A stretch of 62,996 bases of DNA, filler included, from Olpidium bornovanus S191 (taxonomy: Eukaryota > Fungi > Olpidiomycota): the NCBI GenBank assembly GCA_017911155.1. It is 30 parts of 30 records of this genome, joined end to end, with 100 filler letters (N's around TTAATTAATTAA, not from the genome) between each part and the next. Parts side by side here need not be neighbours in the genome. Positions count along the whole stretch, not along the records: positions 1 to 2,729 come from JAEFCI010007155.1; 29 more parts are not named here. One strand, given 5' to 3'. Position 1 is the first letter of the stretch, and each line of letters starts with the position of its first letter. Positions 1-6,866 of this stretch are shown here, in pieces. The position numbers and the translations under genes were made by a program. Under the pieces are notes generated by a model. The model was given only the letters and a program-made list of their open reading frames with translations, had not been told where the DNA came from and did no database searches.

Positions 1-3
1 CCC

Positions 4-45
<42 letters not shown>

Positions 46-1284
46 TCTGTGGAGCACTTTTTTTTTCAGGTTGGCGGGTTTTCGGGATTCACCGGATTGC
101 GGGATTCGATTTCCCCTGGATTCGCGGGATTCCCTTCTTTTCTTTGCTGGATTCGCGGCTGCATCATTGCCACCTAAGTGGTCGTGTTTGTGTAGCAATC
201 ATTTTTCAACACACGCAATCTGACTCGACCGCTCGGCGGTAAAAGACAAGTATCAAGCCCGCAGCAGCAGTCCTCCCCGCGGTGAATTAGTTGCAGAGCT
301 CGGAAAAAGTGCTAAAGTGTGCCGTCCTGTGAATTGATTGCGTTGGAGTATTCAGCAGCATTCTCTCTCCCTCTCTCTCTCCCTCGCTTTTTTTTTTTTT
401 TTTGTTTCCGGGATTCGGCATCAGGCATCCCTCCGACACAAATGCCCCTTCCTCCTCCCCCGCCCCCAGCCTCACGACCTCTTTCCGGTCCAACCCCGAA
501 GATTTTCTATCTCGGTTTGCGGTGCGTGCCGCCCAGACTCGACAGCTTTTGACGCGGGCACCAAAGGCATCCGGTCCACGGAACCTGCGGATAAATCAGG
601 ACGTTTCACGACCCTCAGGAGAAAATGGATGCCGCTTTCGCTTCCGCAGAACGGATCCTCGGGGCAGCCGCGGTTCGAAGTCAGCGCAGCATGTGGGACG
701 AACTTGCACGGGGCCGGCAAAAAATATTTTGGAAAAAGAAAAAGAAAGCTTTCCCGGACCGCATTCGACTGGAAAAAAAAAAAAAATAAAAAATAAAAAA
801 CAGAAAATTCCGTCCCCTCATGTGGGCCGTGTTATTTTTTCGCATGAAAAGGCTTCTCCACAGCAGCGTGCCCTTCCCTGGAAACGACAGTTCCGCTCTC
901 AAAGATTTCGCGGAAGAAGGCGACCGGCTCTCGTTCATTCTGGCCCTCTCGTCAGGACTCCTGTGGGGTGCAAAAAGATCGGAAGGTCTCGTTTCGTTTT
1001 GGTCCGCGCAGAACGTTTCTCCCGAAGGAAAAGCGGGCGGGAGGAGAGAAGTGGGTGGCGGGGAAGGTTTCCGTCCAGTCAGGAATTTGACTCCGACGCG
1101 GCACTGCTGGGAGAGGAGTGGAGGTTGGGCGGAGGGAGGGGCGGGGGGGTCGTGGTGAGAGTGCGGGGGTTCTCGCGCGGGTCCCGCTCTCTCTCGGTTT
1201 CCGCAGTCGCTTCCGACAGAAGGGAAGCCGGAAAAAAAAAAAGAACGACCGCGCAACGACGCGCCGCTCCCCTTCTCGTCGTAT

Positions 1285-2729
1285 ATGGAGGGAAACGGCG
1301 CCTCATCTTCGGCTGCGCGCCGCCCGCGGAAAAGGCAGGAGGGGATGGAGGAGGCCGTCGTCCGCGTCCGGCCGTCGTCCGTCGCCGGCTTCGCCACGTT
1401 CCGGTGCGAGAGGCGGCTCTGGAAAGAGCTGTGCGGACAAGGAGGAGGCCGGCCGACGGCCGCCGCCCGGCACGAGGCCGCCGCCCGCTGCGCCCGAGGG
1501 GTCAGGCACGAGGCCGCCGTTACGGCGGCTTTCGGCGGCAGGCTCCTAGACGCCGCCCGCCACGGCGTGAACGACCTGGGCCGGTGGACCGCGGCGCCCG
1601 CCGGGACGGTGATAGGGCATGCCAGGTTCCGGGTCCCGAACTCGTTTTACACCGCCGACATGCGCCGGGCCGGCGTCGAGGTGTCGACCTTCGTGCCGGA
1701 CTTCATCGAGGTCCGCCGGCCCGTCGCGGGTTTCGGCCCGGATTCGGGCCCGGGTTCGAGCGCGAAGGTGGCTTGGTTTGTGATCGACGCCAAGGCGTCG
1801 AGGGCCGTGCACCCGTCTCACCGGCTGCAGGTCGCGATTTACGCTCTGCTGCTCGAGAGCGTCCTGGACGAAGCGGGCGTAACGTGCGTCGCGGTGCACT
1901 CCAAGGGCGGCGTGTGGCTGCCCGGCGCGCCCGGTTTGGAAGAGTTCTGCTTGGGTTCGATAAAGCCTTCAGCCTTGCGCCTGCTGCGGCTGGACATACC
2001 GCGCTTAGTGTCAGGACCGCTGGAGGACGCCGAGTGGTTCGTTGGACCGAAGTGCGCTGGTTGCGAGAACTTGGATGAGTGCCGCCGAATTGCGCCCCGG
2101 CAGTCTGTGCTGTCGCTGGTTCCGCACATGAGCGACGCCGACCATCGGTGGATGCGGTCGCAACTGGACGATGTATCTCTCGCCGGCCGTCGTCCGCAGC
2201 TGGCGGACCTCGAGGACCTTATCGAACACCCCGCGAAACGCCCGGGCCGATCGCCGGGAGTGCATTGGCGCTCGCGGCGTCTGATGCAGTGCCGGCTCGT
2301 GAACGGGCGGGTCGAAGCGGCCGTCCTCGAATCGTACCGGCGACAGGAACCCGTCCACCTCGGCAGGCCGACGCTCGCGCTCCCGCGAAACGAGGGCTTC
2401 TCTCTGGTCCCGTGCCTGGCGGTCCACCCGGCGGACAATTCTCTGCTCTGTTGGAGTGTGCGGTTGGAGAATTCAGCCGGTGAGCCCGAGATTCCCCCGC
2501 GCAGCTACTGCAGACCGACAGAGCCGGGCGGCGGTGACGGCCCCGCCGTTTCGCTGACGGAGTCAGGTGACAGAGGGTTGAACGGCTTTGTCGAAAGCAT
2601 CCACAAGTGCATGAACCACGCCGAACGGAAGCGGGTTCCCTTGTGCGTTCTGCACTGGGACGACTCCGAGCGCCTTCTCCTGAGGGACTTCCTGCTCGGC
2701 GTCGTCCAGGGCGCGGGAAACGCAACCGG
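1285..2729 (+). CDS. Cas4/RecB/Dna2-like PD-(D/E)xK nuclease with predicted [4Fe-4S] cluster; N-terminal part, truncated at contig end
   Basis: Open, intronless frame. Motifs: RPSSV..F...C41; RG..HE; PD138-139; IDAK (D168/K170); QxxxY (LQVAIY); C257-x2-C260-x5-C266. A following LSLVP/LADL segment recalls TM0106-type RecB-family nucleases. Confidence 0.8.
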
Positions 2730-2829
2730 NNNNNNNNNNNNNNNNNNNNNNNNNNNNNNNNNNNNNNNNNNNNTTAATTAATTAANNNNNNNNNNNNNNN
2801 NNNNNNNNNNNNNNNNNNNNNNNNNNNNN
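2730..2829. other. Artificial 100-bp contig linker (N44-TTAATTAATTAA-N44), first of 29
   Basis: The same linker starts at 2730, 4822, 6983, 8956, 10409, 12187, 13589, 15045, 18987, 21334, 23771, 24919, 26545, 29022, 32120, 33576, 36372, 39954, 41329, 42692, 44329, 46575, 48310, 49758, 51940, 53400, 56868, 60261 and 61739. TTAATTAATTAA puts a stop codon in all six frames. Confidence 0.99.
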
Positions 2830-3444
2830 CATGCAGAGTGTGGGGGGAAAACACTGGGTTCTCAAAAAAATCCTCGACCCTGAAAGTTTCAAAAAAAAAA
2901 ATAGGGGGTCCGCGCGCGCGCATCGCAAAAAATCGCAAAAAAAAAAACCTCCGCGCGCAAAAAATCGCAAATAAAACAAAGATCCGCGCGCGCGTTTCGA
3001 AAAAATCGCCAAAAAAAAAACGCTTCGAGCGGCAAAAAAATCGCAAAAAAAAGGATCCGACGTTTTGCTTCTCCCCCCCGCTCCCCCTTTCTTCCTTCAG
3101 CGATAGAAAGCGCCGTTTTGGAGAGCCATTTTTCGCGTTCCATGTTACTTTGGTTCCCCGGTTTCGTTTTTCGGTGGACGTCTTTCGTTAAATCTCGCCG
3201 ACGTTATCCGGTCGCCCCCGACCGGGCGCCGTTCCCAGCGCGGCCCCGCGGTTATTTTTTTGCTGCGCAGCCGGTATCGTAGACGGGCGAGCCGAATATA
3301 TACATATGTGTGCAGCCCGGCCCGGCGCGGGCCGAAATCAACGAGAACGAGCGCTTCCGAACGCCGCTATGACGCGCCGGCGGCACGTTTCGACTCGGCC
3401 GGGACACACTTCCCCCACCCAACCTGCCGATCCCTTCCGCCGCT

Positions 3445-4462
3445 TCACGCGATGTTTGCCAGGTAGTCGCGGATTTCGGCCGGCTTCAGCTTGCGGAATT
3501 GCGGTATCGAGTCCTCTTCGAGGGGCGCCGCGGCGATCACGCCGGGTCCCCTCGTGTCGCTGATGATGCCGATCTCGATCGACGTCTCCGTCATCTGCCC
3601 CTCGAAGCCCTCCTTCAGCGTCAGTATCGCCGTGTGCACCGCGTCTTCGATCTCCATGTCGGGGCTGAACCTGAATCGAGTCCCGGAAACCGCCGCGAAG
3701 CGAGCCGCGCGTTAAAAAAAAAAAAAAAAAAAACGAGCGCCGCAGTCACGCTTTCCCGCACCGCGTCGCGCGTGCCGCCGAAAACGATTATCAACGCACC
3801 GCTTCTCCAGGAAAGTCTTCGCGTTGACCATGTTCTTCCCGATGGCCGACGCCTTCCACGCCCAGTAAGACCCGGACGGGTCGACTTGGTACAGGGCAGG
3901 GCCGTTATCGTCGTAGCCGGCGACGAGAAGAGAAACTCCGAACGGCCGGACGCCGCTGCGCGCGCGCCGGGCGAAACGTGGAAATTGCGCGAGCGAACGC
4001 GCGAGAGGAGAAAGGGAAAAAAGAAAAAAAAAAAAAACAGGGCTCGCGGTAAGCGGGATGTCGGCAAGGGGAAAGCCTCCGCGTCAGGGAATTCCCGGCT
4101 TTCGGTCACGCATAAATGCGCAAAATTGAACCGGGGGGGGGGGGTTGTTGGTCCCTTTCTTTTTCATTTCTTTGAGAGTAAGTGCTTGGCCGTCAGACCT
4201 ACGCACCCGCTCTGCGTGTATTCCTGCATCACGGCGGCGACCTCCTTGACGAGCTGGCCGACGGGGGGGGTCTCCATGTAGACCTGCTTGTAGGCCTGCA
4301 CCGCCTTCCGGGCCTTGTCAATGAGGACTCGGGCGTCCGGGCCCATCCCGGAGTACACCAGGCCGGCGTTCCTGGACACGGGCACGACCTTCTCGAGCGT
4401 GGACTCGTCGATCAGCGGGGAAGTCGTCTTCTTCTCGGTGACGATCACCACCCCGTTCGTCG
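3445..4462 (-). CDS. PRE8: 20S proteasome subunit alpha-2, 5'-truncated; exons 4207-4462, 3800-3955, 3445-3670
   Basis: [80 protein letters not shown] introns join in frame. Confidence 0.97.
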
Positions 4463-4740
4463 CTGGGGGGTGGCGGGTGGCGGGGACGCGGGGCGCAGGG
4501 CATGGCGGTGAGGCGCGAGGAGGAGCGTCAACGTGCAAACGCGCCCGCCCCGACCGACGGAGCCCAGCAAAAGTAAGAAGAAGTTTCCCAAACCGCTGCT
4601 GGGCAAACCGCCAAACCCGGGCGGCGCCTGCCCGGCGGACGGGGCTTTTCTTTTTTTTTTTTTTTTTTCTTTTTTTTTTTGAATCGTCATTCGGGCCTTT
4701 CTGGCGCCCTTCTTCCCCCCCCCCCCCCCGGCCCCCCCCG

Positions 4741-4821
<81 letters not shown>

Positions 4822-5183
4822 NNNNNNNNNNNNNNNNNNNNNNNNNNNNNNNNNNNNNNNNNNNNTTAATTAATTAANNNNNNNNNNNNNNNNNNNNNNN
4901 NNNNNNNNNNNNNNNNNNNNNGGGCAGCACCTGTAAAAAAAAAGTTTAAATAGATCCACGGAATTCCCTTCGGGGAAAAAGGATTCTAAGAGCGACATTT
5001 GGGGAGGAGGAGGGGGGAACCGAAGAGGGCGCGGGGGCCGCGCATTTGTTCCAGATCACCCACCGGCAAGCCCGGAACCTCCGCTACTAACACGCACGAC
5101 GCAGGCTCGCCGGATATCTGCTACGCAATCAACCCGCTTCACGGGCCGCCGTCGGATCCTGGGCCGGCGAGGACCGGCGGCGG

Positions 5184-6866
5184 TCACGCCGCCGCAGCGC
5201 TCTCGTTGTCTGCGGCGGTGCCGCTGAACTTCCCATGCAAACCTCTGTTCGCATTCGCTGCTGGGGCCTCCTCGGAAGTCCCGCCCGCACTTGACGAGGA
5301 CGACCAGCTGGATCTGCCGCCGCCGCCGCCGCCCGGCAAGAGTCGCAACTTGTTTCCCGCTTCCAGGTCACCCATCTCCTGCGCCGTCAAGAACCGGCCC
5401 CCTCGACCCCGCGGTCTTCTCATGGCGTGTTTGTGCCGGGATTCGTGATGGTAGGGCTGCGGAAGCGTTGGGGAAGGGGGTGTGGGAGCAAGAACCGAAG
5501 CAGGCGGATTGTCACACGGGAGTGGAGCAACTGCACGCGGAGGGCAACGTGTGTGGTCGGAAGCACGAAACGGAAAACGGCCCATATTCCAGGCAGCCTG
5601 GAGACTTTCGAGAAAAAGACGAGCCGACCAGCTGAGGCGCGGTCATGAAATCCGGGGCGACAAGGCCAAGATGCCCGCGAGACCTCGCGAACAAAGCCGG
5701 AAGGCCCGCGAGACCTCGCGACCAAGGCCCGGAGGCCCGCGGGACCTCGCGAACAAGGCCGGGAGGCCGGCGAGATCTCGTGAAAACAAGAATGACAACA
5801 CCGAAAGCGCGTGCGTCCGGCGCAATCGCCCTCCGCGGCAGCGTGCGAAGCGGAGGGCTCGCTCGCACGAACGTACGCACGAAACACACTCGCGCGCGCG
5901 CGCGCACACACACACGACCGCCGGTCGTCGGCCTGTCCGCGGGCCCCGTGCTCACCTTCCGGGACTTTTCCAGCTTGTTCAGCTCCTCGAGCTTCGCCCT
6001 CGCCGCCCTCCTCCTCAGAATCCGATGGTACTGTTTCGCGTTCACGTACAGCGGCTGCTCTTCAAGAACGAGCGTCGCCACGGCCGGCGCGTGCGTCGAC
6101 TGTACTTGGGACAAAGCCGCGGCCGCGGTAGCATCGTGCGCGACGGCGGCTGCGGTGACCTGGAAACGGACGCCGTACACGGCCGCAGGATTCACAACCG
6201 CCGCCTGTCCCAAGGAAGCGGCGGGGACGATCTGTTTCCCCGTTCCAGAGACAGTCAGCCAGTCAGCCCCTTTTGGTGCCGTGGGTAAGGCGAAGGGAGG
6301 GAGAAGGGTTCCTCTGCAAGCGGGGTCCGCTCGGTCCGTCGCCGCCCGTTCGACGCACCACTGTTCCGTACAACTGATGCGGATACGACACGAGCCCTCC
6401 TCGTGCGTATGCTTGTGTCAGGTCTGGCGGCTTGGGGGGGGGGGTGCCGGCCGCGGTCAGGAAACAAAGCCGTTGCGTCAGACGCGGCGGCGCGCCGAGA
6501 CGCGAGGCCCTCTCTCCTCGGACTCACCAGGTCCGCGGCGGCAGGCGAACAAGCGTGGGCGGCGGCGGCTTCCGCGGCGTGGGCGGCGGCGGCTTCCGCG
6601 GCGTGGGGGCAAGGCGACGTGCGGGGCGGGAGCTGGGATAGCCGGTTGCGGCTGCGGCTGCGGCTGTGGTGGTGGGGAGGGTGCGGGGGGCGGTTGCACC
6701 GGCTGCGGCCGTGGCCGAGGCCGCGGCCGTGGCTGTGGCGGGAGTGGTGGAGCAGGCTGCGGCGGCGGTCCGGGTTGTGGCTGAGGCGGCTGCGGCTGCG
6801 GCTGCGGCTGTGGCGGCGGCGATCCGCGCCGGTGATCGCGCTGCGCGGCGGGGAGGGGGAGTTCAT
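5184..6866 (-). CDS. HAP2: CCAAT-binding factor subunit HAP2/NF-YA, complete; exons 6528-6866, 5956-6231, 5184-5456 (295 aa)
   Basis: EEQPLYVNAKQYHRILRRRAARAKLE...K|PYHHESRHKHAMRRPRGRGGRFLT. Both introns are phase 0 with GTGAG donors. Confidence 0.96.
5674..5790. repeat. 31-bp minisatellite (about 3.8 copies) in HAP2 intron 2
   Basis: Units start at 5674, 5705, 5736 and 5767; consensus cccgcgagacctcgcgaacaaggccggragg. Confidence 0.9.

Follow-up and report, generated by a model that had tools for sequence, protein, structure and literature searches.

A putative Bad-like iron-sulfur nuclease-helicase gene at a contig edge of the fungus Olpidium bornovanus S191

The window analyzed here is a stretch of 62,996 nucleotides (nt), filler included, that joins 30 parts of 30 records of the Olpidium bornovanus S191 genome (assembly GCA_017911155.1); its first part, positions 1 to 2,729 (record JAEFCI010007155.1), contains an open reading frame (ORF) that runs off the contig edge. 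We consider it highly likely that positions 1-2729 cover the start of a gene of the Bad-like nuclease-helicase family, with its first 481 codons and the promoter-proximal region before them, and that this family member is eukaryotic, most likely fungal. The only member of the family that has been studied is bacterial, namely Bad of Geobacillus stearothermophilus, a 1245-amino-acid (aa) protein that is both an iron-sulfur (Fe-S)-containing single-stranded DNA (ssDNA) endonuclease and a 5'->3' superfamily 1B (SF1B) translocase/helicase (Wilkinson et al. 2020, PMC7430649). The Olpidium copy is intact with its predicted catalytic residues, and it is found in a eukaryote.

Results

The ORF belongs to a family of large nuclease-helicases

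The ORF begins with an ATG at position 1285 and continues for 481 codons with no stop up to the contig edge at 2729 (Table 1). Its GC content at codon positions 1, 2 and 3 is 0.70, 0.53 and 0.82, respectively, which is a strong coding signature; from roughly position 1200 on, frame-specific GC at the third position (GC3) stays near 0.8-0.9, and the upstream 1.2 kb is without frame bias. Positions 1285..2729 are a genuine gene start with the 3' part of the gene missing at the contig edge, and only about the first third of the gene is covered by the ORF on the contig.

An exhaustive phmmer/HMMER search of 1.84 billion representative proteins with the 481-aa query returned 261 relatives at E<=1e-3, of which 82 reached E<=1e-10. 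The best match, which we refer to as P0001 (E 1e-71, 36% identity over aa 24-474), is colinear with the Olpidium protein, aa 24-474 of the latter aligning with aa 43-482 of the former. (A word-index protein search with the same fragment returned nothing because that search is limited by length and the relatives measure 1,200-1,500 aa.) Full-length relatives, at 1,200-1,500 aa, carry a C-terminal SF1B helicase (AAA_11/AAA_12). The P0001 gene lies on a 6-kb ENA contig (ERZ26165376, L001; labelled 2x), where positions 1245-5902 hold three ORFs that abut one another, each in a frame of its own (1245-3341, 3343-4290 and 4271-5902); they encode the nuclease, AAA_11 and AAA_12 in turn and together are colinear with the fungal full-length proteins. 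The two frame changes result either from introns of very small size or from indel errors, the assembly being of low coverage.

Eukaryotic relatives were found in chytrids (Spizellomyces punctatus SPPG_00910, Polychytrium, Fimicolochytrium and Rhizophlyctis), in Mucoromycota (Mucor, Benjaminiella, Zychaea, Bifiguratus and Jimgerdemannia), in the amoebozoan Planoprotostelium and, more than 30 times, in Mortierellomycota, where most are deposited as 'Tripartite DNA replication factor'. Prokaryotic members come from Actinomycetota, Planctomycetota, Myxococcota, SAR324, Competibacteraceae, Bacillota and methanogenic archaea, and their NCBI name is 'bifunctional RecB family nuclease/DEAD/DEAH box helicase'. 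Consistent with this, a shape search of the ESM Atlas returned clusters of that same name (412-431 residues, template-modelling score (TM) 0.73-0.75), and the language-model neighbours of the Olpidium protein were TM0106/PDDEXK_1/RNase_H_2 clusters. Against a hidden Markov model (HMM) of the family, members score 200-520 bits and the Olpidium protein scores 382 bits. Two other candidate matches were discarded, a Pfam MST match (E 0.11) as noise and weak KaiC matches among PDB sequences (phmmer, E ~0.1) as the product of low-complexity Ala/Arg-rich sequence.

Members of the family vary in length. Some of the prokaryotic ones reach 1,950-2,100 aa; in two proteins (P0101 and P0087) the Bad-like module begins at about residue 700-760, behind an N-terminal extension, and P0101 also has UvrD-helicase and PDDEXK_1 Pfam domains. 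At a further locus (L045 8001-14288) an ORF of 2,096 aa has its Bad-like match at the start, so that the extra length there is C-terminal.

The family is tied to Bad through P0142, a protein of Anoxybacillus flavithermus with 1245 aa, D150 within IIDIK and K815 within GPPGTGKT. Bad is inactivated by D150A (nuclease motif III), which abolished its ssDNA endonuclease, or by K815A (Walker A) (PMC7430649). P0142 is 62-63% identical to its Geobacillus orthologues, and P0142 and these orthologues alike bear the NCBI family name given above. (A locus search with a prokaryote-only alignment gave no Geobacillus among the loci returned.) The Olpidium protein matches P0142 with a BLASTP E of 2e-19 (aa 25-293) and with a phmmer E of 2.7e-8 in the whole library, and the BLASTP alignment places its motif III aspartate and its four conserved cysteines on their counterparts in P0142 (Table 1).

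The N-terminal domain resembles iron-staple nucleases

Motif conservation was counted in an alignment of the Olpidium protein with 40 homologous N-terminal segments (41 rows). Residues D139, D168, K170, Q182, Y186, C257, C260 and C266 are invariant, and cysteines 50, 69, 201 and 222 of the Olpidium protein are not conserved. Judged from this alignment, the conservation of motifs and cysteines is far beyond chance, and all four nuclease motifs are intact together with the pattern of one N-terminal and three C-terminal cysteines (1+3) that characterizes the Bad-like family.

An AlphaFold2 model of the Olpidium protein built with the same 41-row alignment reached a predicted local distance difference test score (pLDDT) of 85.6 and a predicted TM score (pTM) of 0.83. 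The best structural match of aa 25-281 in VIA-align was Cas4 (7mi4_A: Z 12.8, root-mean-square deviation 3.8, 196 aligned). MGME1, AddB, RecE, Exo5, AdnAB and Dna2 ranked after Cas4 at Z of about 9-10.3, with AddB at 9.4, Exo5 at 9.2 and Dna2 at 9.0; the top Foldseek match was likewise a Cas4 (8d3l, E 3e-5). In the model, one of the conserved cysteines lies at the first helix of the domain and three lie at its last helix, which is the topology of the iron staple, and by homology with Bad a 4Fe-4S cluster would staple the nuclease domain.

The nuclease is followed by a helical linker, modelled as helices 284-295, 306-314 and 324-334, whose motif is kept across the family (consensus S..P.LS......L.............EDL..LL in the 41-row alignment) and lines up with 'LTLVAG...I.TL..LA' in TM0106-type proteins. 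This linker is probably a helix-hairpin-helix-like DNA-binding element. Beyond it, aa 368-481 were modelled as strand-strand-strand-helix-strand-helix and match ExoI, RNase T, 3'hExo and polymerase exonuclease domains at Z 5-6.2 (VIA-align), values that are low because the contig edge cuts the domain.

These results bear out much of the original prediction, which was made from the DNA alone and described an intronless Cas4/RecB-like Fe-S nuclease. The residues it named (C41, the PD138 core, DAK168-170, QxxxY and C257/C260/C266) are all at the claimed positions and are conserved in homologues; Cas4 is the top fold match; the LSLVP/LADL segment and the continued ORF downstream of the nuclease are conserved across the family; and the colinearity with P0001 agrees with an intronless ORF over the part at hand. 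The further domains that it asked to be looked for were also found, an RNase H-like one in aa 368-481 and an AAA_11/AAA_12 helicase in the relatives.

The central domain is predicted to have a DnaQ-like fold

The central domain of Bad was reported to be without a recognizable fold (PMC7430649). We modelled residues 262-800 of P0142 with 48 homologues (49 sequences), obtaining a pLDDT of 91.1. Residues 75-320 of this model form a DnaQ-like 3'-5' exonuclease fold, closest to the exonuclease-like domains of B-family polymerases and Pol alpha (4b08_A: Z 11.8, 179 aligned); further matches, at Z 8-11, are to dozens of DEDD exonucleases. Residues ~200-490 of the model resemble Sen1/SETX in its stalk and barrel (Z 8.5-8.7; Foldseek E 5e-4). 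The model thereby assigns a fold to the 'unknown' central domain of Bad, which is predicted to be a degenerate DnaQ-like fold, its usual D-x-E lost, followed by an Upf1/Sen1-like stalk and barrel.

Residues 290-481 of the Olpidium protein align with the start of this domain, so that the conserved central domain of the family is present for its first part. The family has (D/E)-P at the position where TM0106-type proteins have D-x-E, and the Olpidium protein reads A-V-H-P there (H381-P382). Because conservation across the 49 sequences extends to no acidic residue in the first half of the fold, we read the DnaQ-like domain as a non-catalytic DNA-handling module; it is most likely not a catalytic 3'-5' exonuclease and would serve as a structural or DNA-binding module instead.

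The Olpidium protein falls in a eukaryote-bearing clade

A FastTree phylogeny of 109 N-terminal regions divided into a clade of 40 rows that contained all named eukaryotes and the Olpidium protein (support 99) and another clade, of 69 rows, that contained all named prokaryotes (support 99). The eukaryote-bearing clade was recovered by a quick IQ-TREE analysis (LG+C20, 50 rows, TM0106-type outgroup), where it had 24 rows and a Shimodaira-Hasegawa approximate likelihood-ratio (SH-aLRT) support of 97; the prokaryotic lineages around it were unresolved. In the IQ-TREE phylogeny the Olpidium protein and P0001 were sisters (support 99) and stood beside the Mortierellomycota and Mucoromycota and not beside the chytrid/amoebozoan group. 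(Note that these are quick or FastTree supports on trees with long branches and should be read with caution.) Moreover, neighbours of eukaryotic type (PX/Nexin, TIP49 and DNA ligase fragments) are found beside two members of the eukaryote-bearing clade.

Since the Olpidium protein lies inside one eukaryote-bearing clade, the tree speaks against a recent bacterial transfer into the Olpidium genome. The original prediction had suggested a possible bacterial origin; a prokaryotic origin is possible, and if there was one the tree suggests that it was old and common to the whole clade and not specific to the Olpidium genome.

We also considered whether the contig could be prokaryotic contamination that carries an ordinary bacterial Bad-like or TM0106-like gene, as might be argued from the very high coding GC (0.70), from the absence of an intron within 1.4 kb and from the wide distribution of the family in Actinomycetota, Planctomycetota, Myxococcota and methanogens. 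We think this very improbable given that the clade in which the protein lies includes all named eukaryotes and excludes all named prokaryotes (support 97-99), that the gene of the sister P0001 is split by two frame changes, and that other clade members have the eukaryotic neighbours listed above. The 1.28 kb upstream of the ORF, moreover, is non-coding, contains long poly-T/poly-A and CT tracts, has no sigma-70-like promoter, and is in these respects unlike compact bacterial DNA.

One long-branch row of the eukaryote-bearing clade (P0243, at L051 6901-14338) adjoins a protein with AAA_12 and UCH ubiquitin-hydrolase domains and an SMC_N protein; its contig may derive from a eukaryote, a giant virus or a prokaryote.

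For the family as a whole we put forward, as a tentative proposal about which we are ourselves somewhat doubtful, that Bad-like nuclease-helicases constitute an old eukaryotic lineage, present in chytrids, zygomycete-grade fungi, Olpidium and some amoebozoans, that is separate from DNA2 and has so far gone unrecognized behind DNA2-type or 'hypothetical' annotations. Its members would combine an iron-staple nuclease ahead of a 5'->3' motor with an inactivated DnaQ-like DNA-handling module.

Points that weigh against the assignment

Several observations weigh against the reading of the ORF as a Bad-like nuclease-helicase gene. At cut-off, no Pfam or NCBIfam model matches the Olpidium protein. 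H381 occupies a position where 34 of the 41 rows have D or E, and the protein differs in this from most Bad-like members. Its composition in amino acids is unusual (GC-rich), a bias that may influence its placement in the tree, and its Fe-S binding and nuclease activity are putative, being predicted from homologues. P0142 was taken as the equivalent of Bad from its length, its residue numbering and its Geobacillus orthologues, and not from the sequence of Bad itself (WP_053413574); membership of the Olpidium protein in the family does not, however, depend on P0142 being that equivalent. Finally, the contig ends at codon 481, so that the helicase lies outside the sequence at hand, and a few family matches are only 500-700 aa long (for example P0014, 509 aa, and P0048, 527 aa), which may be fragments or possibly short forms.

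The last two points would be expected if the gene encoded a stand-alone nuclease, either Cas4/Exo5-like or TM0106-like with an RNase H-like domain, that had no helicase and ended just past the contig edge. One shape-matching Atlas cluster of 605 aa for which no helicase family is listed, and the occurrence of short TM0106 proteins (390-530 aa), are in keeping with such a protein. We nevertheless regard it as improbable, since AAA_11/AAA_12 are present in all named fungal full-length relatives, the P0001 contig continues into AAA_11 and AAA_12 ORFs, many of the short matches come from short contigs, and the Olpidium frame is still open, inside the DnaQ-like fold, where the contig stops. If the gene does encode a Bad-like nuclease-helicase, the missing 3' part would comprise the rest of the central domain, an Upf1/Sen1-like stalk and barrel and an SF1B helicase (AAA_11/AAA_12), and the full Olpidium protein would have about 1,300-1,550 aa.

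Other features of the locus

The region upstream of the ORF yielded no Pfam match among its ORFs, no tRNA, no Rfam match and no sigma-70-like promoter. Its tracts resemble eukaryotic intergenic low-complexity sequence and contrast with the 70% GC of the coding part: within 361-400, T13 comes after a CT-rich tract (ctctctccctctctctctccctc), and A-rich runs (aaaaaaaaaaaaataaaaaataaaaaa) lie about 500 bp 5' of the ATG. The heptamer GGGATTC occurs four times on the plus strand within positions 1-420 (at 84, 101, 126 and 410), where 0.5 occurrences are expected; a count of four was not attained in any of 200 shuffles. Looser copies (GGATTC/GGATTG) are interspersed among these sites. The copies may be a promoter-region repeat or mere low-complexity sequence. 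Within the ORF, a basic patch, ARRPRKRQ (aa 11-18, positions 1315-1338), lies in the poorly modelled N-terminus of the protein and may be a nuclear localization signal.

Table 1 Features of positions 1-2729 of the window
Feature	Position	Strand	Evidence
5' part of putative Bad-like Fe-S nuclease-helicase gene	1285..2729	+	ORF; GC3; 261 phmmer relatives; AlphaFold model
Cas4-like PD-(D/E)xK 'iron-staple' nuclease domain, aa 25-281	1357..2127	+	Structure match; BLASTP to P0142
C41 codon, N-terminal Cys of putative 4Fe-4S ligand set	1405..1407	+	C in 35 of 36 covering rows; on C17 of P0142
E76 codon, nuclease motif I glutamate	1510..1512	+	E in 38 of 41 rows; invariant in nuclease-only alignment
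P138-D139, nuclease motif II	1696..1701	+	D139 invariant; P138 in 38 of 41 rows
D168-A-K170, nuclease motif III (D-x-K)	1786..1794	+	D168 and K170 invariant; D168 on D150 of P0142
Q182-V-A-I-Y186 (QxxxY), RecB-family motif IV	1828..1842	+	Q and Y invariant in 41 sequences
C257-x2-C260-x5-C266, C-terminal Cys triad of iron staple	2053..2082	+	All invariant; on C239/C242/C248 of P0142
Helical linker, aa 284-334 (LSLVPHMS...LADLEDLI)	2134..2286	+	Three modelled helices; conserved motif
First half of DnaQ/RNase H-like fold, aa 368-481	2386..2727	+	Structure match; cut by contig edge
Upstream non-coding region, presumably promoter and 5' leader	1..1284	.	Lower GC (0.46-0.62); no coding signal
Poly-T run	7-42	.	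Composition of contig start, ~36 nt
CT-rich tract	~361-386	.	Composition
A-runs	770-800	.	Composition

Discussion

Proposed mechanism and possible roles

By homology with Bad, the enzyme would load onto ssDNA at junctions of single- and double-stranded DNA (5' overhangs or flaps), and its motor would run 5'->3' with a Mg2+-dependent ssDNA endonuclease in front, such that the nuclease would cut the very track along which the motor moves; in this scheme the DnaQ-like domain would contribute to structure or to DNA binding. The Fe-S cluster, the Mg2+-dependent ssDNA endonuclease and the 5'->3' translocase have, within the family, been shown for Bad alone (PMC7430649). The cellular role may be DNA-end or flap processing in repair or action on foreign or mobile DNA.

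A Type III-like methyltransferase adjoins bad in Geobacillus (PMC7430649). Two of our own observations echo this report: a Bad-like protein of 1810 aa (P0277) has N6_Mtase and HsdM_N domains, and an Eco57I/N6_Mtase gene (L051 16251-19862) lies two genes downstream of a family member. In Methanolobus bombayensis (L034 6490-13712) the Bad-like gene is flanked by a fragment of a UvrD-type helicase and by a Schlafen AlbA_2 protein, a setting reminiscent of a defence island, and in Planctomycetota loci the neighbours are unrelated and of housekeeping type. No conserved operon partner was found in five prokaryotic loci. Assignment to a named defence system was tried and set aside, PADLOC having returned only generic helicase similarity (DpdJ, MkoA) for full-length relatives. 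The prokaryotic neighbours and fusions are hints of a link with defence. If the methyltransferase links do mean defence, then the eukaryotic clade could represent an inherited nucleic-acid immunity or end-processing enzyme of prokaryotic type that has been lost in Dikarya and animals. Genetically tractable hosts (Mucor, Mortierella and Spizellomyces) are available among the fungi for learning what Bad-like enzymes do.

Comparison with known systems

Cas4 (7MI4, 8D3L, 4IC1) is the closest structural match of the nuclease domain and has the same four-cysteine Fe-S arrangement and QxxxY motif. Scores against Cas4 families fall below cut-off (PF01930, 13 bits with a cut-off of 22.7; TIGR00372, 14 bits with a cut-off of 65); E is ~2e-3 to 9e-3 for the PADLOC Cas4 models, and Cas4 models across curated libraries are sub-threshold at E 0.002-0.1. 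Unlike Cas4, the Olpidium domain belongs to a large multidomain protein and is without CRISPR context. AddB/AdnAB and Exo5/MGME1 are of the same fold class (Z 9.1-10.3) without similarity at the sequence level. The iron staple is also present in AddB and Exo5 (cited in PMC7430649); in AddAB the nuclease trails the motor, and Exo5 and MGME1 are single-domain mitochondrial enzymes. The Olpidium protein has no match to an Exo5 family and runs into further domains. Cas4, Exo5 and Dna2 are not alignable with the Bad-like family at the sequence level, and the similarities to them are at the level of the fold only.

TM0106-type proteins, by comparison, are homologous across the whole piece, from nuclease through linker to RNase H-like domain (hhalign 98.9%, E 1.7e-17, 386 columns), and match its shape in the Atlas at TM 0.58-0.63. 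The TM0106 family (TIGR03491) often occurs with RNase_H_2 and an SF1 helicase. On TIGR03491 the Olpidium protein scores 17.3 bits (E 0.0018) against a cut-off of 97.45, and bacterial Bad-like members, at 20-52 bits, are also under that cut-off; conversely, TM0106-type helicase proteins reach no more than 20-37 bits with the Bad-like family HMM. There is no RNase_H_2 (PF13482) match in the Olpidium protein by Pfam, and TM0106-type proteins keep the D-x-E exonuclease motif whereas the Bad-like family is without it. The original prediction had likened the part downstream of the nuclease to TM0106-type proteins more than to Dna2, a likeness that holds at the superfamily level but not for TM0106 proper, the true family being Bad-like.

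That the gene is merely a divergent form of the organism's canonical Dna2 orthologue deserves separate consideration. Dna2 shares the order of domains, with an iron-staple RecB-fold nuclease N-terminal to an SF1B motor (the motor being seen in the relatives of the Olpidium protein), and its structure 5EAN matches by fold, and by fold only (Foldseek E 1e-4, Z 9.0). 'Tripartite DNA replication factor', the name under which more than 25 Mortierellomycota proteins (within P0154-P0188) are deposited, is the description of yeast Dna2, and some of these fungal orthologues bear the JGI name 'DNA replication ATP-dependent helicase Dna2'. Set against this, there is no Dna2 Pfam domain in the Olpidium protein (E<=1) or in nine relatives; family profiles gave no match among PDB sequences, Dna2 included, even at E<=10, and phmmer with the Olpidium protein gave nothing relevant there; and Cas4 is a better structural match than Dna2 (Z 12.8 versus 9.0). 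Moreover, the Bad-like family has bacterial and archaeal members and a patchy distribution (early-diverging fungi, Amoebozoa and prokaryotes), and it has an additional central DnaQ-like domain of about 500 aa where the Dna2 nuclease is joined to the helicase via an oligonucleotide/oligosaccharide-binding (OB) fold and stalk. The central domain of Bad has been stated to be absent from every eukaryotic DNA2 (PMC7430649). According to the same paper, Bad and Dna2 are alike in biochemical behaviour. We find a canonical Dna2 scarcely credible, and one of the grounds that had been named for dropping the original prediction, a grouping with Dna2 or Exo5 orthologues, did not materialize: there was no family match and no PDB sequence match, and the tree shows a separate family. 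The Dna2 names of the Mortierellomycota proteins look like annotation transfer via the helicase part and not true Dna2 orthology, and recognizing the Bad-like family corrects DNA2 annotations in early-diverging fungi.

With Bad itself the Olpidium protein shares the four nuclease motifs, the 1+3 cysteine pattern, an aspartate (D168) at the position of the catalytic D150, and a conserved central domain after the nuclease, and its relatives share the C-terminal SF1B helicase. It differs from Bad in belonging to a separate, eukaryote-bearing clade, with an identity of about 22%, and eukaryotic members are longer (1,300-1,550 aa), with N-terminal extensions in Mortierellomycota. The account of Bad covers bacterial and archaeal members only (PMC7430649), and we found no relevant literature on TM0106, on Cas4-like/RNase H-like proteins in fungi or on the NCBI family name. 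Where the original prediction spoke of an uncharacterized fungal nuclease, it is right insofar as the fungal clade had gone unreported; its bacterial counterpart Bad has been characterized, and orthologues are deposited for many early-diverging fungi. The eukaryotic clade of the Bad-like family is an unreported one that is often mis-annotated as DNA2, and the Olpidium protein is a eukaryotic member of this already known family and not a new kind of system.

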